Assembly (NCBI RefSeq): GCF_037042905.1
Contig: NC_087262.1
Coordinates: 10,292,001-10,356,000 of the forward strand
Reading direction: 5' to 3'
Length of the DNA: 64,000 nucleotides
DNA from: Lytechinus pictus
Taxonomy: Eukaryota
Positions 34,497 through 64,000 of this stretch are shown piece after piece (within the stretch, counting starts at the first letter, position 1; each line of letters opens with the position of its first letter). The notes beneath the pieces are model-generated. The model was not told the DNA's origin and made no database searches. It saw nothing but the letters and a program-made list of their open reading frames with translations. The position numbers and the translations under genes are program-made.

Positions 34497-46366
<11,870 letters not shown>

Positions 46367-46780
46367 GTTGAGCGAGACTGATCAATTTGTGAGAATGTAA
46401 TAATGTGATGATAAATTACACTTATAAAGAAAAGTTTTCTGCCAATAATAAAATACATTTTTAAAGCAAAATATTTTATTTATATCAAATTTGTGCCTAA
46501 CTTTATTCTTAGATAACACTTTTTAATATTTATTTATTATGCGAGGTTGTGTGGTAAAAACGTATGCGAAATACGAAGTGTACAATTACAATAGGCCGAA
46601 TGGAGAGAAGACCATTGATCGGCGCGTGATTTTGAACAAATGGATGGTAACGATGTCCTCGATTAAAGTAGGATTTTCTCATTAACCGTAAGATATTTTT
46701 TATCATCAGCTCATTGATATTACATGTATGGAAATGGTTAAATGTACTTTAAAGTTCCAAAGCGATTGGTCTATTATGAA
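46367..46780. promoter_or_regulatory. Probable shared bidirectional promoter of COPS4 and LIN54, with CDE/CHR element and CCAAT boxes
   Basis: GGCGCG(46621-26)-TGAT-TTTGAA(46631-36); CCAAT 46442-46; ATTGG 46765-69; candidate + strand donors at 46647 and 46688. TSS positions not visible. Confidence 0.6.
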
Positions 46781-47065
46781 TCAGTTTATTTGCAGTTTTA
46801 TTACGGCCCTGTGATATAAAATTGCTGCATCACTAAATCAATTCGCCACGTAAAAGGTGCTTGGGTGGAGAGCTTCGCTGTGATCGAAGCCGTGACCCCA
46901 CTCGATCGCGAGGACAATTTTGGCCGTGCTTGTCGGGGCAGTGAGTGTGTCTTGCCTGGTAGTTGACGGCCTCTGCATGGGTTAAACATGGCCTGGCCAG
47001 TGTATTGTTGGACACAGACTCTCCATGCTGTAGTCTACCATGGAGGACAATGCTTCATGTATGTT

Positions 47066-48020
47066 GTTAGACAGCTGGCAACCGTCTGTTTCGAGAAGTT
47101 TTTTTTAACATTTTAAATTTTGTTTAATTCTCCTCGTACACACGTCACAAGACGGCTCGTGATTGTGCAGCCGCCATAGAGCCTTTAGAGGGTAAACATA
47201 AATAACAATGCAAACTCCTCCCGATAGGGCTCATGGATTTTTGTCTTTATTTCTTAAAAATATACAAAAAGAACTGGACCTAAATAAAGATTAGTATTCC
47301 GTTTTGGCCTGAAGTGCACCTAAACGGGGAAAAATAAACTTAAAACTGGGGAAAAATAAAAAAACAGTGACTTACTTTGGCTGTCACGCAACTTCACATC
47401 CCTGTTTTATCCGAACTTAAGACATAAACATAAAGTGTATGGCCATCGAGTCCTCTGTACAGATCGAGCTAGAACTTCGGTCTCTGTATTTGGTGAGTGG
47501 AGCCAACCAACCAACATACATGTAAATGTAACAGAGACCGAAGCTTTTTTTTTAAGTTTTAGTCTAGTTAGACAGCTGGTAGCCGTCTGTTTCGAGAAGT
47601 ACTTTTTTAAACATTTTAAATTTTGTTTTAATTCTACACACGTCACCATGATTAATAGACGGTAGCGATTGTGCAGCCGCCATTATTAGGGGGTTAACAT
47701 AAATAACAATGCAAAAACCCCTGACGGGCTCATGGACCAAAATAAAGATTAGTATTCCGTTTTGGCCTGAAATGCACCAAAACGGGGAAAAAACTTACTC
47801 AAAAGGAAAAAAACAGTGACTTTGATAGTCTACTTCGCAAGCTTCGGCTGTCGCGCAACTGCCACTTCGAGCTTCCCTGGTTTTTCCAAACTTAATACAT
47901 AAACATATGGCCATTGAGTCCCTGTACAGATCGAGTTAGAACTTTGGTCTCTGTAATTGGTGAGTGGAGCCTACAGAGTTCAGCGGAACAACCAACATAA
48001 CAGAGACCAAAGTTTTGGTC
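47066..48020. repeat. about 500-bp tandem duplication (2 copies) upstream of the LIN54 coding region
   Basis: gttagacagctgg..ccgtctgtttcgagaagt at about 47066 and 47567; shared blocks through aaccaacata. Confidence 0.85.
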
Positions 48021-48919
48021 TACAGTACGTATGCATGTATGAATTCCTAGATTTTTTGGTATGAGTTTCCTATGAAAAAAAATGAATTAGAAATTTAGAT
48101 AATTTAGAGTAAAACTAAGTACCCAAATATTGGACACTTATATTAAGTTAAGCATAGATCTAAATTTAATTGGACCAAAACATCATTGTCCATTGAATCA
48201 AATAAAAATCATATGTACATGTAACGTTTGTCATTAGATCTATTTTGTCAGGGTTGGCGATTTTTTTTATAAAAAAAAAATAAATTGATAGGATTTATTT
48301 GATTTAAATCAATTTTTTTTTATTCAAATCAGATTTTTTTTTTTTTGACTATTTTCTAAAACAAAGTGGAAATACCAAAAATATAACCCTTACACTGAAA
48401 TCTTTTTAAAAATCATACATTTCACAACTAAAATTATTATTAACTTTTCTATTTCATAATTAAATCCAGCCAAAATGTAATTTATAAAGAATACATGTAT
48501 GCAGGTCTGTATAAAGTCATGACGAAGATGCTGTTTCCGCATCCTCTCGTGTCGGGTATTTAGCTCCTACTGACTGGTTTGGTCAAGTTGAGGAACTGCC
48601 TTGGTACAGCTAATAAGTTAGTGTTCCTATTCAAATATGAAATGAGGATCAGTTTCTTTGGAAGAATTCCATGACTCAGAGACTCATATTCTTGAAAGAG
48701 AAACATTCTTGATTTTCAAACTAAGGACTGAAAATCATGTGTTTAATAAAAAAAACTCCATTTAAAAAACAAATTTAAACCTCCTTTGGTATTTGAGCCA
48801 TGGTTGGAGCTTTGTTATTGTTTAAATCATTGATTTGCAAAGCTGTGTCTTATTGGGAAAAGTTGCAGGTTTATTTGAATTATTTCTTTTAGTACAATAA
48901 ACCAGGAGTTGTACATTGT

Positions 48920-50395
48920 ACTTGTACATGTTTCAATGGAAGTGATTTAAATCAATGATTTAACAAAAAAATCATAGTGAAAGTGGAGTAGGGGGCTAAG
49001 TGGTAACTGCGATAAAGGATTTATTCATGTTTTGATGATATATTGTTGATAAAAAATTTCTATTTTGAGTAAAAAAAAGTAAAACTGCCACAAATAAAAA
49101 AATTGTCAATCATTTGTACATGTTTTAATGGAAGTGATTTAAATCAACGATTTTTTTAAAAAATCATAGTGAAAGTGGAGCAGGGGGCTTTAAACCGCTT
49201 ATGAAGGAGAATGTTTTGATGATATATAGTTGATAAAATCTTTCTATTTTGAGGAGAAAAAAATAAAACTGCCACAAATAAAAATATTGTCAATCATTTG
49301 TACATGTTTGAATGGAAGTGATTTAAATCAATGATTTTTTTTTTAAAATCATAGTGAAAGTGGAGTAGGGGGCTTTAAACCGCTTATGAAGAAGAATGTT
49401 TTGATGATTATAAAGTTGATAAAATCTTTCTATTTTTAGTAAAAAAAAAGTAAAACTGCCACAAATAAAAATATTGTCAATCATTTGTACATGTTTCAAT
49501 GGAAGTGATTTAAAGGTCAAGTCCACCCCAGAAAAATGTTGATTTGAATAAATAGAGAAAAATCAAACTAGCATAACACTGAAAATTTCATCAAAATTGG
49601 ATGTAAAATAAGAAAGTTATGACATTTTAAAGTTTCTTTTATTTTTCACAAAACATTGATATGCCCAACTCGGTGACATGCAAATGAGACAGTCAATGAT
49701 GTCCCTCACTCACTATTTCTTTTGTTTTTTATTGTTTGAATAATATAATATTTCATTGTTAACAGATTTGACAATAAGGACCGACTTGACTGAACCATAT
49801 AGTATTGAAAATTGAAAATTTTACAATGTCATAACTTTCTTATTTTACATCTGATTTTGATGATATTTTTAGTATTGAACAATGCTTATTCCACATGTTC
49901 AGGGGGGAATAAATCGTTATTTCACTTGACAATCAGGAGAAAATTAGAATATTTCATATTTCATTCAATAAAATACAAAAGAAATAGTGGGTGGATGATG
50001 TCATCAGTCTCCTCATTTGCATACCAATCAGGATGTGCATATAACTGTTTTATGAAATTAAGCAAAATTTTAAAATGTCATAACTTTCTTATTTTACATC
50101 CGATTTTGATGAAATTTTTAGTGTTATGTTTGTTGGATTTTTGTCTTTTTATTCAAATCAATATTTTGTTGGGGTGGACTTGTCCTTTAAATCAATGATT
50201 TAAAAAAAATCATAGTGAAAGTGAAGAAATATAGGAGCGCCTTGAGCACCTAGCAAGGTGGATACGTGCACTATACAAATCCTATATATTACTTATTATT
50301 ATTATTGTCAATCATTTGTAATATGTTTCAATGGAAGTGATTTAAATCAATGTTTCTTTTTATTTAAATCATATGAAAGTGGAGTAGGGGGCTTG
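48920..50395. repeat. about 187-bp tandem array (about 5 units) interrupted by a MITE
   Basis: ggaagtgatttaaa at about 48938, 49129, 49313, 49501, 50333. Confidence 0.85.
49514..50186. mobile_element. Kolobok-like MITE, TTAA TSD
   Basis: TTAA|AGGTCAAGTCCACCCCA..GGGGTGGACTTGTCCT|TTAA; empty site visible in adjacent repeat units. Confidence 0.9.
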
Positions 50396-50953
50396 AAATA
50401 CTAGAAGATAATTTGGGATTACATCAGCTTACTCATTGCATATTCATGCAGAGAAATGTTTCACCGACATAATAATAGAAACTTTGTTTTTCCTGTTCTG
50501 ACTTTTATTAAATTTTCTCTTGTTCAGTTATGTTAATTTCAGCCTGGAGTACATGTACACCTTTAATTGATACCATTGTTACTTTTTAAAAATCATTTTC
50601 CACAGGTCAATCAACTGCCAATGTTGCTCAAAGTTAGTAAATTTCTAACTTCTCTGTTGTAGCTACTTTGCCTTTTCAGTTTGTTAAACTAAAGTGAGAA
50701 ATGAGAACAAGCTATCAGTCTGCTTTTAAGGGGATATTTGCATTTAATAATCTTTCAATCTTTTTTTTCCAGATTTTTCTTAAATGGCCAGTGAGCAATA
50801 CATGTATCTGATTCCTGAAAAATGTTGAAGGAAAAGGTTGCAAGTAGCTGATGGCATTATAGAGTGCTTGGAATTCCAGCTTGAGTGCTTGGCAAAAGCG
50901 TCAGCAATCTGCTGATTAAGTATACCTTGTCGACAGAGAATTGATTGGACATC

Positions 50954-51682
50954 ATGGCCGCAAATGGTGAGAAAACTGCAGGTGAGACGAATGGCAGTGA
51001 GGCCTCAGGAAACATCCTGATAAAACCTGATGGTGGTGATCACCAAGGCCAAAGTGGCAACCAGTCTGCAGGAACGGTTCGTCTTGTGAGTGGAGCCACA
51101 GGTGGAGGTGGCGGTGTCCCACTGCAAGTCCTGACCCCTCAGATGCTAGCGAGCCTCACACAGCAAGGACTCATCATCCAAAATGACGGCGATAGCAAAG
51201 GAATCCTGCAAGCCGTCAAACGGGCACTGCCGTCATCTTCTGCAGAGCAAACTGTAACAAAGGTTGTGATCACACGCAACCCTGGGCACAAAACGTCCTC
51301 AGCGAACGTGTCCGGAACGAACCCTTCGTTTAAATTGCAAGGTGATTCCAAGCTGCTGGGGAGTGGGTCGCCCATTAAGGTCATAACTGTGTCACAAGGA
51401 AGCAACATTCCAAAGGGTGTGGTCATTGCAAGCTCACCTAGTAAACAGACTATCGCTCCATCAAATAAGATAGCACTACCTCCCGTAAAAAGCCCTGGAA
51501 AGACAATCATGCTCGCGAGTTCCACAACACCGAAAAAGATTGCACCTGCATCGAACTCTGGCTCAGTGGGACAGACTATTTTAGTGAAGGGAAGCATGGG
51601 TTCGACTCCAGGAACAATCACATTGAGCTCGGGGGCTGTAGCCAAAGTCATCAATGTTATGAACACAACCGTTGCCTCATCA
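50954..51682 (+). CDS. LIN54: LIN54 first coding exon (low-complexity N-terminus)
   Basis: atcATGG context; 243 codons; TCA|gtaagt donor; upstream acceptor ttttttttccag ending 50772. Confidence 0.85.
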
Positions 51683-54600
51683 GTAAGTATACAGTATAAA
51701 GTACATGAAGTTACCATTCAATTATGTTTATGTCATCTTCGCAAAATATTTTTTTTTTTAAGGGACTTTACATTGACAAATCATGGGGAAATCAAGGCTA
51801 ATCTAAAACAGAGAAGGGATTCAAGTCATTCACTCGGCTGCATGCCTGGGGTGTTACGTAATAGACGCCGGCGTGTCTGGGAGGTCTAATTTTAGGAGAG
51901 CAATAGTTAGTAGACTAACCAACCAGAAGTAAACTGCATGTTTTCACTTTGAAACATGTAACTCCACAGAGGTTATTTATTTTGCTTTAGCAATCAAGAG
52001 ACCTGCTATGAGTCTAGGAATTGGGATTGTTGGAAGCTAAAACTGCGACGACCCGAAGTAAATAACCATCGGTCAAATTCGTGTGCTGTCCGAATTTTAT
52101 TGCATTAGTCCGATGGGCGCTCATGACGGACGGATTATATTATGCAAGTCAATTGGCCTTTTGCAAATTTCGTATCGATTCAATTTCCCCATGATTCGTC
52201 AGTTGCCAGGCCCTTTAATATACATCCCAGCAAAAATAATAATAATACATAACCTTTATAAGGCGCTTACTACGGGTGTTCCAAGCACACTGTGTTCTGT
52301 TTATTTTTTAATGCTTTGGAGAAAACAAAATGACACAACTAATACAGTATGTACAACTTATACTAATTATCTAAACCGATGTGCACCTCCAATTGACTGA
52401 CCCACAACTGAATCATCTATTAAACAGGTAGGTTTTGAGTAGGGTCTTGAACTGACTAACAGACTTGGCATTGTGAATGTAAGAGAATAATAATAATAAT
52501 AATGCAGTTCTTCTATAGCGCATTTCAGACCTGACAGGACTCTCAATGCACTTTACAGAAATAGAAATAATACAACATAAGGAATTACTTAGAATAACAC
52601 TTAAACAACATCATCAGTTACATATGGCATATAAATATTGGAAAAGGTCTATTTGAATGCTTCATTAAAGAGAAGTGTTTTAAGTTGGGATTTGAAAAGT
52701 CCAGGATTATTTTGTGATAGGAGAGTACTGGGGAGGGAATTCCAAAGGGTTGGGGCACTGTAGGAGAAGGACCTTTCACCATGCATCTTAGTTCTTAGTC
52801 TGGGTAGTTGAAGGAGTTGTTGAGTTGATGATCTAAGTGTCCTAGAGGGGGTGTATGGAGAAACAAGTTCAGAAATATGTTGAGGGGCAAGACCATGGAC
52901 AGCATTAAATGTTATTAGAAGGACTTTGAAGCGAATTCGTGATTTGATGGGTAGCCAGTGAAGTTCTTTGAGGATTGGGGTGATTTGGTTGTGTTTCTTG
53001 GATCTTGGAGAAGAGGGTAGCTTGTTCCAAAGAGAGGGGGCAATTGAAGAAAAGGCACGGTCACCATATTTTGTAGAGGTTCGAGGTCCAGGAGTTAATT
53101 GCATCGTAGACGATGAACGGAGAGGTCTTGAGGAGATACTAGGGCGTAAAGAAATGAGATCTGTAAGATATTTTTGGGGATTGGCCATTGAGAAATTTGT
53201 AGGTATTAAAGAAGGAGAACTTTGAAAGAGATACAGTGATGTCTGGGGAGCCAATAAAGGGGACACAGAGTTGGGGTTATGTGCTTGGATTTCCTTCTGA
53301 GAGAGACTAATCTAGCAGCAGAGTTTTGAACCCGTTGAAGTGGAACAAGGTACAATGTATGTATGAGGGAGGTTGGAAAATATTGAATTGCAGTAATCTA
53401 GGTCACAGGAAACGAATGCATGTGTTAGTTTGGCAGTTATGGGTCGGTCAAGTAATTTCCTAATCTTTCAAATTTTGAAAATAAATGTTGAACCTTAGAA
53501 CCCCATACTCCAACATGGCTTTTATGTGGTCAAGTGGTTTGTTGATGTCTTGCACCTGAAAAATCCTAACTATACATGTCTGTTAGTTTCCAGTTAAATT
53601 GCATTGTCAACATCTCATCACAAAAGAAAATCCAAATATATTGTATATCTCGGCACTGGAGGTAAACAGATGTACAGTACATCTATCAGTATCATTGCAA
53701 ATATTTCTTTATTTTTGTTTGCTATTATTACTTTTACTTCATAAGAGTTTGTTTCAAAATGCTGTTGTGCACATGTAGTATATCCTGTGGAATTTGAACT
53801 TTTCGAAAACTGAATTCACCTCAATAAAGGAAACCAAAACCAAAGGAGAGAAACAATCTCATTGGAAAGAGTAAAATGAGAGGAACAATTTAAAACAAGT
53901 TTCTCAAAATCAGTTATGAAATAACAAGTTATGGACGTTTAAATGGTCTTGTTGTTCTTTATACGGGATCCTCAAATTGGCAAACATGCTTTAAAATGGC
54001 TGAGTTTGTGGACAACTCTCCATTTGTTTTGTACACAATTTTTTCAGATTTTCCCTATTATCTTTAAAGTTGCATATTGCCTCATTCTGAGCATAATATA
54101 TGTCATGGGAAAATATAATTCACACCACATATGTCAAGGTCAGGAGGAGATGATGTGAAATATGGAAAATAAAGGAGGAAATCTTAAAATATGTGTACAA
54201 AATAAATGGAGGGTTGTCCACAAAATCAGCCATTTTGAAGCATTTTTGCCAATTTGAGGATCCCCATAGAAAGTACACGACTTTTCAAACTTCCATTACT
54301 CGCTTTAATATTCTATAACCGATTTTGATGAAACTTGTTTTAATTTGTTCATCTCATTTACTCTTTCCAATAAGATTGCTTCTTTTCTTGGGTTTTGGTT
54401 TCCTTTAAACCAAAAATATACAAGACTGGATGATTTGAAGTTCGATGTTGACCTTTTCTTTTAGTATTGATGTTGGGTCAATTTTAGCATCAAAATAAAA
54501 ACAAATCTTAGACTGGTCATGAGAAAATTCTTACTCGATGTTGAGCTATCAATAGTGTGATTTGGACTGTTTTTATAATCAAACAGTTTTTGAGCTATGA

Positions 54601-60600: not shown

Positions 60601-63600
60601 CAACTTCCACATTTATTTTAATTGAAAATATATTTCACAATACTTAATAACAGTAATGAATACAGAAAATGTTTATATAAATCAAATCAAATCATTTTCA
60701 CAATAATATACAAACATTACAAATATGTACAAAACAAGAAACACACAATTGAAAAGGAAAATGAACCAAGTAAGGGATTCAAAACATAATATAAAGAAAA
60801 AGCCAAAAGCAGACATTTATTAGTCTTAAAAATCAGGCACCCAACATGAAGGAGACAGTTAGTGCAATCAAAAAGACATCTCTTAACAATATCAAGTATA
60901 TGAATGTGGCTCACATTTAGAACTTTCAAAATATCATTTAGGAAAATCAACATGATCATATAGGTATCATACAATGCTACAAATAAATGAACAAACAATT
61001 AATACCATAAGAAAGAACATAATTACACAATACAAAAATCCAACCAAAAAAAAGCTAAACCGGTCATATTTCAAAAGTAAGGAGTAGATTTTAAATTTGA
61101 TGTCAATTTTTATTTTCAGGATGTTGGCTGGAGACGGGACTGGAAACAGGCCACGCAAACCTTGCAACTGCACCAAATCTCAGTGCCTCAAACTGTAAGT
61201 AATCTGGGGTCATGTTACGCAAAACTTAGCAATCGATCTTAAAGTTTATTTGTATGTTGGATTGCTCATTATGATCAATGCAATCAAGTACTAAAAGTTA
61301 GCCCTACGATCAATTGCTAAGTTTTGTGTTATGGGTCCCTAGTTGCTCAATCGGATGACCTTTACATGAAAGCTGTATTGTAGCAATATTTTTGGCTTAG
61401 ACAAGCTGTCATTCTGAGACTGTTGAAAATCATAGAACCCACTGTTGTGATTGATTCCATTGACCACAATGTACAATAAAGTGTAGAAATTAAGTGTATG
61501 ATTAATTGCTTAAGTTTGTGTTACAGGACCTTAGTTGCTCAGTCGGGAGATGTTTTCATGAAAGTTGTCTGCATAGACAGGGTTCCCACAGTCATGGAAA
61601 ATTCTGGAAAATCCTAGAAAAAATTGTCATGGAAAGTCAGGCAAAAGTCAAGGAATTTGGTGGAAAAGTCATGGAATTGCATTTACCTCTTGGCTATGGC
61701 AGCTTTCTAGTTTGTTGTGTCTCTCGCAACTCTCATACTCTGTGATCATACTCTGCTATTATAATTGGTGTTCATGATTTCCATTTTTCCCAGTTTTATG
61801 ACATCCCAAATTCTACATAACTCCCGGGAAGTCAAGGAAAGCAGCAATTAAGTAAATAAAAGTCATGGAAAAGTCATGGAATTCTGTTTTCAAAACATCT
61901 GTGGGAACCCTGCATAGACCAAACTGTTGTGATTGATTTCATTGACCACAATGTACAATCAATCTTAAAAATCAAGCCTATGATTCATCGCTTTTTGTGT
62001 TACAGGACCCGAGATGCTCAATCGTGAGACCTTTACAAGAGTGTTGTCAGCTTAGACAAGTTGTTATTCTGAGACTGTTGTCAGTGGTAGAACAAAGTGC
62101 TATGATTGCTTTGACCACAATATACAAACAATTGCGAAAATCAAGCATTATTGACGAGTTGTCATTATCCAACATTTACCGTAGTTAAAGACACCTGTGC
62201 TTTTCAGCCAATCAGAGTAGATCTATAGTTATCATATCTGATTACTTGTTAGACTGTGAATGCAATACCTATTTTGCTAATTAAATCTGTAATGTCACAT
62301 TTTCTACCGGAACCACTTGGCATATATTTTGACTCGCCTGAACGAAGTTTGGCAGAAACCTAGTGATTAATTTTTTCCTGTTAGTCTGTTTTGTTGAGGA
62401 TAATGGGGTCGAAGGTCATCTAGGGGTCAATAGGTGAAGTTTTTGTTCAGCTTGCTCTCATTTCTTCATTTCTGCATCAATTGTTCTTACACTTGGTAGA
62501 AATGATTCTAGGGTAATACCACAAGTGTGTTGGAGATAATGGGGTCAAAGGTCATCTTGGGGTCAAAAGGTCAAGTTTTGTTCAAACTGCTCTCATTTCT
62601 TTATTTCTGCAATAATTGTCTTTACACTCGATACACAACCATTTGGTAATACCATGAGGATGATAAGGTCAAAGGTCATAAAGGGGTCAAAAGATCATGT
62701 TGCATATTTCATCAATCGCGATATCAGGCGAGACTCGTGGCTCGTAAACCACCTTGTTTATTCAAACATACAAAAACTTTGGTAATCATGTTATTGGATT
62801 CTGTGTGAACTATTTTGAGATTGTTACCACAACTGGTATTGATATTTAATGATAGAAAACATGGCCCTTCTTCCCGTGCACCAGGTACTGCGACTGCTTT
62901 GCTAACGGGGAGTTCTGCCGCAACTGCAATTGCAACAACTGCCTCAACAACTTGGATCACGAAGACGAACGAACCAAGGCGGTCAAGGCCTGCCTGGACA
63001 GGAACCCTATGGCCTTTCACCCCAAGATAGGCAAGGGGCACAACGGTCAGACGAACAGACGGCACAACAAGGGGTGCAACTGCAAGCGATCGGGATGCCT
63101 GAAGAATTACTGCGAATGCTACGAGGTAGGATTGCGTTGCATCCTTGCACATTCTTACATTGCCTTTTGTTAATACACTGACATCCTTTGGCAAAGGTTT
63201 GTCTACATTTGCCACTCTCCACCCAGGTGTAGTATATGGGTACCTGGTAGGAATTCCTTGAATGCTCGAGCTTACACTCACGTCCTTTTGCATGGCTTTT
63301 ATCTTTATCAGCCACTCTCCACCCAGATGAAGTAAATTTTACTTTGAAGATATGCTAATTAAACATGTTTTTAATATTCTGGTATTTGTGTAAGTCATAT
63401 ATATTTGTAGGAAAAAATTGTTTTAAAATCTTGATGCGGTATTCATTTGAAAGACCAAAGCTTTATTTTGTTGATTATGTATCTATTTTACCTGAGCATA
63501 ATTCTATAAAAATATGAAGGACAATCAAACAATTTATCTATTCAGGCTTGCACAAAGTTATCACTTTTTAATGTGCCTCTCGTCTTTCTCTTGAAGGCCA

Positions 63601-63796
63601 AGATCCTGTGCTCCTCTCATTGCAAATGTGTCGGATGCAAGAACTTTGAGGAGAGTCCAGAGCGCAAGACCTTGATGCACCTGGCCGATGCGGCGGAGGT
63701 CCGGGTCCAGCAGCAGACGGCCGCTAGGACCAAGCTCTCCTCACAGCTCCAAGACTACCCAACCAAGACCAGGGAATTCAGCGATACAGGAGAGAG
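50954..63796 (+). CDS. LIN54: Protein lin-54 homolog (tesmin/TSO1 CXC domains; MuvB/DREAM DNA-binding subunit), 3'-partial, 8 coding exons in window
   Basis: Exons 50954-51682, 56392-56608, 57933-58108, 58794-58973, 59310-59446, 61120-61194, 62885-63125, 63597-63796 splice in frame. [38 protein letters not shown] hinge, [63 protein letters not shown] are recognisable LIN54. Confidence 0.95.
52235..53450 (-). mobile_element. Two nested L2-type LINE 3' fragments
   Basis: [39 protein letters not shown] (inner) and [27 protein letters not shown] (outer); two (ATT)n tails. Confidence 0.88.
53824..54408. mobile_element. Kolobok-like foldback MITE
   Basis: TAAAGGAAACCAAAACC..GGTTTTGGTTTCCTTTAA; long internal inverted repeats. 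Confidence 0.8.
54612..54970. mobile_element. Harbinger-like MITE
   Basis: AGGCCCCTGTTACA..TGTAACAGGGGCCT TIRs. Confidence 0.75.
55628..56289. mobile_element. Tc1/mariner-like MITE, TA TSD
   Basis: TA|CAGTGCGTCCCAGAAAAAAC..TTTTTTGTGGGACGCACTG|TA. Confidence 0.85.
56392..56608 (+). CDS. LIN54: LIN54 coding exon 2
   Basis: ttcag|CAG GTA..CAAG|gtaatg; [19 protein letters not shown]. Confidence 0.85.
56771..57329. mobile_element. Kolobok-like MITE, TTAA TSD
   Basis: TTAA|AGGTCAAGTCCACCCC..GGGGTGGACTTGTCCT|TTAA. Confidence 0.88.
57933..58108 (+). CDS. LIN54: LIN54 coding exon 3
   Basis: tacag|CT..CAG|gtaagt; [16 protein letters not shown]. Confidence 0.85.
58794..58973 (+). CDS. LIN54: LIN54 coding exon 4
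   Basis: tccag|AAT..CAG|gtgagt; [27 protein letters not shown]. Confidence 0.88.
59310..59446 (+). CDS. LIN54: LIN54 coding exon 5
   Basis: ttcag|ACG..GG|gtaagt; Ser/Gln-rich linker; phase consistent. Confidence 0.82.
59527..60033 (+). mobile_element. Helentron/HINE-like element (short-array copy)
   Basis: ttttgtcttgcctgc..gcgagactatagg..gcaggcgagactgtcagaggcgctccactcgtt; homologous to 7307-8727. Confidence 0.78.
61120..61194 (+). CDS. LIN54: LIN54 coding exon 6 (start of CXC1)
   Basis: [15 protein letters not shown]; ttcag/gtaagt borders. Confidence 0.95.
61578..61912. mobile_element. hAT-like MITE inserted in a local tandem repeat
   Basis: CAGGGTTCCCACAG..CTGTGGGAACCCTG; CATAGA duplicated on both sides; aagtcatggaa subterminal repeats. 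Confidence 0.82.
62327..62759 (+). mobile_element. Second Helentron/HINE-like family
   Basis: ttttgactcgcctga..tcaggcgagactcgtgg..ccaccttgttt; 3 internal ggggtcaaaggtcatc repeats. Confidence 0.6.
62885..63125 (+). CDS. LIN54: LIN54 coding exon 7 (CXC1-hinge-CXC2)
   Basis: [40 protein letters not shown]. Confidence 0.97.
63597..63796 (+). CDS. LIN54: LIN54 coding exon 8 (end of CXC2)
   Basis: [40 protein letters not shown]. Confidence 0.96.
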
Positions 63797-64000
63797 GTGA
63801 GGGCTGCAGGGACCTTGTGGTTTTAACAGGGAGGTGCCATGACATTTGCTCCAGCGACAATTGCTCCGCTGTAAATTCCACACACTAATGGAATGACCAA
63901 CTTCAACCTTGGATTTAACGCTATACCCTATCCTAAACCTGACCCTAAACCTAACATAAAACCCTATTGCAACCCCAACCCTATATCTTAGACGAAATAA

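Follow-up and report, generated by a model that had tools for sequence, protein, structure and literature searches.

The window, as we call the entire 64,000-nt stretch of Lytechinus pictus DNA that was analysed, harbors two genes in a head-to-head arrangement, COPS4 on the minus strand and LIN54 on the plus strand. The exons of LIN54 run along the plus strand from 50954 to the end of the window, and the encoded protein is 97% identical to the LIN54 of Lytechinus variegatus. The coding part of COPS4 exon 1 (46293-46366, minus strand, with the ATG at 46366-46364) is delineated by an RNA contig covering 46293-46364, by opposite-strand reads and by conservation of the exon in tblastx comparisons. 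Between the two genes, at 46621-46636 on the plus strand, lies the 16-mer GGCGCGTGATTTTGAA, which reads GGCGCG-TGAT-TTTGAA, that is, a CDE, a 4-nt spacer and a CHR. This string, as well as its orientation toward LIN54, had been picked out by an earlier examination of the DNA letters, which we refer to below as the sequence-only reading, and both were confirmed letter for letter. Cells switch between quiescence and proliferation under the master control of DREAM/MuvB, the complex in which LIN54 is the CHR reader.

Structure of the LIN54 gene

To 46100-51500 we mapped RNA data of the same species, namely, three RNA-seq runs that were stranded and rRNA-depleted and one set of RNA contigs. A splice joint 46687>50773, with GT..AG boundaries, was found in 13, 12 and 12 reads of the three runs, respectively, and a rarer joint, 46667>50773, also with GT..AG boundaries, in 2, 3 and 0 reads; in addition, one RNA contig of 1,551 nt connects 46613-46687 to 50773-51500. 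On the LIN54 strand, no reads fall in 46281-46461, and coverage sets in within the last 20-30 nt of the bin 46462-46642. Taken together, the spliced reads, the contig and the strand-specific depth indicate that LIN54 starts with a short non-coding exon 1 at 46613-46687 on the plus strand (5' end at or slightly upstream of 46613, major donor after 46687, minor donor after 46667), which is followed by a repeat-filled intron 1 of approximately 4.1 kb, delimited by the splice joints (46688-50772), and by exon 2, defined by the spliced RNA acceptor and the reading frame (50773-51700, the 3' end being approximate), which contains the main ATG at 50954. Because 50773 is a splice acceptor, a LIN54 start near 50600, the distant start that the sequence-only reading had named as fatal to its interpretation, is excluded. 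The start is found at about 46613, beside the motif, and the site that had been assigned to the LIN54 promoter in fact coincides with the mapped 5' end of the mRNA. Relative to this start, which was derived from RNA-seq and the RNA contig and is approximate at the level of single bases, the motif occupies approximately +9 to +24, the CHR approximately +19 to +24, and the 19-nt conserved block described below approximately +9 to +28. CHRs are typically found at the transcription start or in its close vicinity (PMC4176359), and this is the position observed here, given the 5' end of the contig at 46613 and the splicing of exon 1 to exon 2.

The exons that encode the two CXC DNA-binding modules of LIN54 are located on the plus strand at 61121-61195, approximately 62884-63140, and 63594-63797. 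The DNA-contacting residues of human LIN54 are Tyr536 and Tyr610 (PMC4974476), and their counterparts in the window are found in the sequences CLKL|YC, which is split between the exon 61121-61195 and the exon that starts at about 62884, and CLKNYC, near 63099. Both CXC modules thus carry the respective tyrosine in the translated exons, just as had been stated by the sequence-only reading, and the LIN54 protein encoded here possesses an intact DNA-binding domain for a site in its own promoter, as an autoregulatory loop would demand.

Several other features were noticed in the LIN54 transcription unit. The 5' leader portion of exon 2 contains, at 50799, a 6-nt deletion polymorphism that is seen in 6/24, 10/25 and 9/13 RNA reads (three individuals or runs). 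Within intron 1, two tandem copies of a unit of approximately 470-500 bp occupy 47066-48000; the RNA reads on this segment differ at many sites, and their joints suggest further genomic copies. The unit has the appearance of a dispersed repeat family with transcription at some genomic location. A MITE-like element is found in the same intron, at 49506-50194 (and 48900-49530); its inverted arms are 140 nt long and 89% complementary, and tandem units of approximately 185 bp flank it. The RNA contigs over the 49506-50194 region have a very high summed depth on both strands and hundreds of loose ends, which indicates that this is a high-copy element present in many transcripts. In intron 2, a 205-aa open frame on the minus strand (52649-53266) resembles, by eye, the C-terminal tail of a non-LTR retrotransposon protein.

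The CDE/CHR motif

The accepted consensus sequences are TTYRAA for the CHR and SGCGCS for the CDE, with a 4-nt spacing between the two (PMC4974476, PMC4176359). The motif in the window conforms to this grammar: the CDE GGCGCG (46621-46626, plus strand) fits SGCGCS and its GCGCG portion is invariant in 12 of the 12 aligned sequences, the 4-nt spacer TGAT (46627-46630, plus strand) is invariant in all orthologues, and the CHR hexamer TTTGAA (46631-46636, plus strand) fits TTYRAA and is likewise invariant in all orthologues. With the location at the transcription start site and the conservation of the CHR added to the two consensus matches and the spacing, the core fits all the sequence-level criteria for a CDE/CHR site. 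A full E2F site was considered as well and rejected, GCGCG being without a flanking T-run on either strand.

The elements of CDK1 (cdc2), CCNB2, CDC25C and PLK4 are the closest known counterparts: like the LIN54 element, they combine a GC-rich CDE, a 4-nt spacer and TTTGAA, are oriented toward the gene, lie on or near the promoter start, and contain a phylogenetically conserved CHR. The LIN54 element differs from these in that the whole 19-mer, with the spacer and the flank, is invariant across phyla and in that a conserved CCAAT/NF-Y partner is not evident. Two boxes had been proposed as partners of the motif, namely, CCAAT at 46442-46446 (plus strand, approximately 170 nt upstream of the motif) and ATTGG at 46765-46769 (plus strand). 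Both boxes are indeed present, but the proposed role is not supported: neither is conserved in the urchin-starfish comparison, the former is not conserved outside Lytechinus, and the latter is located within LIN54 intron 1. CCAAT boxes are frequent, not obligatory, partners of CHRs.

The pattern GGCGCGNNNNTTTGAA has one match in the 64-kb window compared to 0.01 expected from shuffles, and TTTGAA alone occurs at chance level (131 found vs 121 expected). Across the 811.7-Mb genome, the 16-nt pattern has 50 matches, and the reversed control pattern has 7; approximately 26 of the 50 belong to one transposon family (GGCGCGCGCTTTTGAA), approximately 7 to a second repeat, and approximately 17 are single sites. 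Some of the other genomic matches to the 16-mer fall in coding or repetitive sequence (one of these, L094, is within a coding frame, and another, L096, is a repeat). The abundance of the bare hexamer, these single-copy matches and those in coding sequence or repeats are what can be said for the view that the motif is a functionless chance match in AT-rich intergenic DNA, a view to which its position on the mapped LIN54 start is opposed. The GGCGCGCGCTTTTGAA copies (about 26, e.g. L003-L006 and L016-L019) all contain the match in the same spot of a dispersed repeat, with the flanks ...GGATCTTGGAGTTTCAAC and TAACTTCCCGCGATATGCAATC...; this family is a transposon that carries a CDE/CHR-like string by happenstance.

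Conservation of the LIN54 element

To retrieve LIN54 loci independently of the motif, the exon-2 peptide of LIN54 was used as the query, full-length LIN54 orthologues were collected, and the corresponding genomic loci were extracted. The 19-mer GCGCGTGATTTTGAACAAA (window 46622-46640, plus strand), which has a single occurrence in the 812-Mb genome of the urchin itself, is identical, in the same orientation and upstream of the LIN54 coding start in all five of the following: the starfish Asterias rubens (L035:8710) and Patiria miniata (L036:5232), the brittle star Amphiura filiformis (L039:3275), the crinoid Antedon mediterranea (L040:9130), and the amphioxus Branchiostoma lanceolatum (L042:7415), with the surrounding DNA being otherwise unalignable. 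This 19-mer is exactly the invariant run of a 7-species alignment; when six lineages are compared, no other stretch of more than 2 nt is invariant within approximately 180 nt around it, and between urchin and starfish, it is the sole long invariant stretch besides the COPS4 start, the remaining intergenic DNA being unalignable. Lytechinus variegatus (L034) also has the 19-mer; its promoter is 92.6% identical over 712 nt, so this species is too close to inform on conservation. The loci of Diadema (L033) and Saccoglossus (L041) have no bearing on the question, the promoter not being covered: in the 10 kb that precede the start of the LIN54 coding sequence, neither the block nor a COPS4 exon is present, and L041 includes 1,712 N. 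The 19-nt core has remained unchanged since the echinoderm and amphioxus lineages split. Thus, the conservation of the footprint in relatives, on which the sequence-only reading had made its case depend, extends far beyond the close relatives, from starfish to amphioxus. Five additional lineages, each retrieved independently, have the identical 19-mer at the 5' end of LIN54 in unalignable surroundings, and this excludes a chance match, a reading to which we assign practically no weight.

The conservation is not limited to the 19-mer. A second block, TATTATGGGAT, is well kept in the starfish, brittle star, crinoid and amphioxus as well as in metagenome contigs, and only weakly in the window, where the alignments identify its diverged counterpart as TACAATAGGCC (46586-46596, plus strand). 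The crinoid and amphioxus sequences have approximately 42 nearly identical bases in common around the block.

When metagenome contigs were scanned for exact matches to the 19-mer, 31 contigs were obtained. Having been picked by the 19-mer, these contigs are silent on its invariance, and it is their flanks and gene content that are informative. Flanking similarity to the block is lacking in 18 of the 31, most of them with 44-58% G+C, and these are taken to be chance or bacterial matches. The other 13 contigs, which represent six distinct sequences, carry a longer block of approximately 45 nt, GCATTATGGGAYGGYAATGGTGG-GCGCGTGATTTTGAACAAA. Two of the metagenome contigs, L068 and L083, contain LIN54 exons downstream on the same strand that are closest to those of the bivalve Mya arenaria. 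Another, L073, for which we suspect an insect host, has COPS4 exons in head-to-head orientation approximately 300 nt upstream and a weak LIN54 N-terminal match downstream, and in L058, COPS4 exons are found head-to-head approximately 420 nt upstream of the block. As judged from these neighbors, the block recurs at mollusc-like and, probably, insect-like LIN54 genes. In L058 (L058:14070-14228), the promoter that contains the block is very rich in GC and resembles a CpG island, and upstream of it lies a compact COPS4 gene, the exons of which show up to 93% protein identity to those of the urchin.

The divergent COPS4 gene

Reads on the COPS4 strand are found only in the bin 46281-46461, which implies that COPS4 and LIN54 share a bidirectional promoter of approximately 200-250 nt; the motif is located approximately 255 nt from the divergent COPS4 ATG. 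The head-to-head arrangement of COPS4 (minus) and LIN54 (plus), which spans 46293-51682 in the window, is present in the sea urchin, starfish, brittle star and crinoid, that is, in all echinoderms sampled (L034-L036, L039, L040), and also in the metagenome contigs L073 and L058. The distance from the COPS4 ATG to the LIN54 block is 240-275 nt in echinoderms and up to approximately 420 nt when the metagenome contigs are counted. In amphioxus, the upstream neighbour of LIN54 is an EMP70-family gene and not COPS4, indicating that the element belongs to, and travels with, LIN54. The further proposal that the motif imposes cell-cycle control on COPS4 finds no support, given that the amphioxus element stays at LIN54 next to a different neighbour and that, in head-to-head gene pairs, the CHR regulates only one gene (Mueller et al. 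2014, PMC4176359).

Readers of the extended block

A longer block that includes other motif-like pieces could have another factor or factors as its main readers. Under this interpretation, the block is a composite core-promoter element, and the match to the CDE/CHR consensus is incidental. By consensus, the candidates would presumably be factors that recognize a bHLH-PAS-type GCGTG core, a SOX-like AACAAA and a ZNF143/Staf-like CCCA...C, and the upstream AATGGTGG resembles a YY1 site. The invariance spans 19 nt, with the spacer and the 3' flank included, conservation reaches approximately 45 nt in the crinoid, amphioxus, and the mollusc-like and insect-like contigs, and the resulting footprint exceeds the known requirements for recognition by MuvB/E2F4 (PMC4176359, PMC4974476).

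Among the candidates, Staf/ZNF143 can be evaluated in greatest detail: two features of the 18-bp Staf site are strongly conserved, CCCR (positions 3-6) and C (position 12), and an enrichment of such sites has been described for bidirectional promoters (Anno et al. 2011, PMC3082894), of which the COPS4/LIN54 promoter is an example. Both sequence features are found in the mollusc-like and insect-like contigs only, on the minus strand of GCATTATGGGA (TCCCATAATGC). The likeness, which is one of resemblance only, is partial in the crinoid and amphioxus and is not kept in the window urchin, where the minus strand reads GGCCTATTGTA, without CCCR. More generally, the best-defined parts of the block are a canonical CDE and a canonical CHR, in the canonical 4-nt spacing and orientation and on the transcription start site; the upstream motifs have diverged in the window urchin whereas the CDE/CHR core has not; the remaining factor assignments are consensus resemblances only; and human LIN54 is bound by DREAM in ChIP experiments (PMC5729532). 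On balance, we consider it rather unlikely that other factors are the main readers and the CDE/CHR match incidental.

A six-codon first exon and the 5' leader

In the bivalve-like contigs, in L073 and in the starfish, an ATG is located 5-10 nt past the block (5-7 nt in the bivalve-like and insect-like contigs) and is followed by exactly 16 nt and then by a GT donor. The mini-exon of L083 encodes MHAQEL, and the annotated N-termini of bivalve LIN54 proteins are MPAQEL or MPTQEL; this comparison indicates that, in the bivalve-like contigs, the block immediately precedes a six-codon first coding exon. The loci that contain the mini-exon and the block are L068:9849-10007 (minus strand), L083:5432-5590 (minus strand), L073:7599-7757 and L059:351-509, and their counterpart in the window is 46640-46687. 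From these sequences, the ancestral LIN54 exon 1 appears to have been a six-codon coding mini-exon. In the window urchin, the mini-exon appears to have decayed into two uORFs (46640-46666 and 46644-46685), with the main donor now 20 nt downstream, at 46687, and the ancestral donor at 46667 relegated to minor use.

The block is transcribed, at approximately +9 to +28 from the mRNA 5' end, and this placement within the 5' leader makes an RNA-level role possible, such that the block would act as a leader element controlling the translation or stability of the LIN54 mRNA; the fixed arrangement of the ATG and the donor in the bivalve-like and insect-like contigs and the uORFs of the urchin exon 1 could be construed in the same way. 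However, the block shows no consensus structure or covariation (-0.05 kcal/mol, 0 compensatory pairs), the Rfam search returned no match, and the conservation extends upstream of the mapped 5' end. With neither structure, covariation nor an Rfam match, an RNA element was rejected as the main reading, and we regard such a function as quite improbable. A conserved uORF peptide was rejected as well because the small upstream frames are not maintained, with a 1-nt insertion in Patiria and no counterpart of their ATG in starfish.

Putative autoregulation of LIN54 by MuvB

The most likely interpretation of the 16-mer is that it is the core of an ancient LIN54 core-promoter/5'-leader element and a true CDE/CHR site. 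We estimate at roughly 70% the probability that MuvB binds here to the promoter of the gene for its own reader, LIN54, being repressive as DREAM and, possibly, activating together with Myb. Under this scheme, the two tyrosines with which LIN54 contacts the minor groove would dock MuvB on TTTGAA. While cells are quiescent, DREAM would also contact GGCGCG, four bases upstream, through E2F4/DP-p130, and LIN54 would be repressed; in cells that cycle, the same CHR would serve MuvB together with Myb for the activation of LIN54. The output of LIN54 would then depend on the state that its own complex is in, which amounts to autoregulation. We infer MuvB binding, autoregulation and cell-cycle dependence at LIN54 from the agreement with the motif, from the LIN54 residues that are conserved, and from the fact that the human gene is listed as a DREAM target.

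With regard to the latter, human LIN54 and LIN9 both appear in Table 1 of high-confidence p53-DREAM targets and are bound by p130, E2F4, LIN9 and LIN54 (Engeland 2018, PMC5729532). The gene for the CHR reader is thus itself DREAM-bound in human, and the autoregulatory logic would be the same as that proposed for the urchin; the evidence is different in kind, consisting of genome-wide ChIP and expression data without a cis-element in human, and of a cis-element and its conservation in the urchin. Autoregulatory feedback of MuvB / B-Myb-DREAM has also been proposed from expression data (Nabeel-Shah et al. 2021, PMC8216455), and in Tetrahymena, knock-down of RebL1 lowers the Lin54-like and Lin9 mRNAs (PMC8216455). 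The idea common to that study and the present analysis is that MuvB subunits cross-control each other; the former relied on expression correlations, with no defined site, and the LIN54 element supplies a candidate site. The sequence comparisons suggest that the putative loop, by which the cell-cycle machinery would regulate itself, is of ancient origin.

One aspect of the element runs counter to a simple CDE/CHR reading: invariance is just as strict in the spacer, TGAT, and in the 3' flank, CAAA, as it is in the CDE and CHR themselves. According to Mueller 2014, only the CHR itself is conserved, and a CDE is present in just 23% of CHR promoters (PMC4176359); furthermore, LIN54 is absent from Table 1 of that work, which includes 148 late cell-cycle genes with conserved CHRs (PMC4176359). 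Set against these findings, the invariant TGAT and CAAA, together with the upstream extension, imply that MuvB/E2F4 alone does not explain the footprint, and this degree of conservation goes beyond the known behaviour of CDE/CHR elements. A tentative idea, which we consider possible rather than probable, is that the entire region of approximately 45 nt is a module, consisting of a Staf-like site, AATGGTGG, the CDE, the fixed spacer, the CHR and CAAA and followed by the six-codon exon, that has been essentially frozen since the bilaterian ancestor. If this is the case, self-regulation of the MuvB reader would be an ancestral, dosage-critical circuit, and the invariant spacer and flank would stand for either an extended recognition code of DREAM/MuvB or a partner factor that is obligatory, neither of which features in the current CDE/CHR models.

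The presence of DREAM at the human LIN54 promoter is already known from genome-wide lists, and DREAM subunits have been hinted to be among their own targets. In the literature searched, we found no paper containing the phrase 'LIN54 promoter' and no prior description of the LIN54 cis-element, of where it lies with respect to the start of transcription, of its conservation or of a conserved circuit for LIN54. What is new is the precise 19-nt site on the LIN54 start, which echinoderms and amphioxus share without a single difference and which is found again at mollusc-like and, probably, insect-like LIN54 genes. The survival of both this promoter element and the head-to-head COPS4-LIN54 pair over several hundred million years is unusually clear. 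With their invariance, the spacer and flank offer a natural experiment on which sequence features, in addition to the two hexamers, are read by DREAM or a partner. Because the site is kept between phyla and the sea urchin is amenable to routine reporter injection and knock-down, MuvB autoregulation becomes directly testable.

Two single-copy matches to the 16-mer elsewhere have a promoter-like look. One of these, L084 (G000:C8:35022503), has ATTGGCT approximately 30 nt upstream and ATG|GTGAGT 15 nt downstream, and the other, L085 (G000:C7:38288970), has CCAAT and TTCGCGGG close by.
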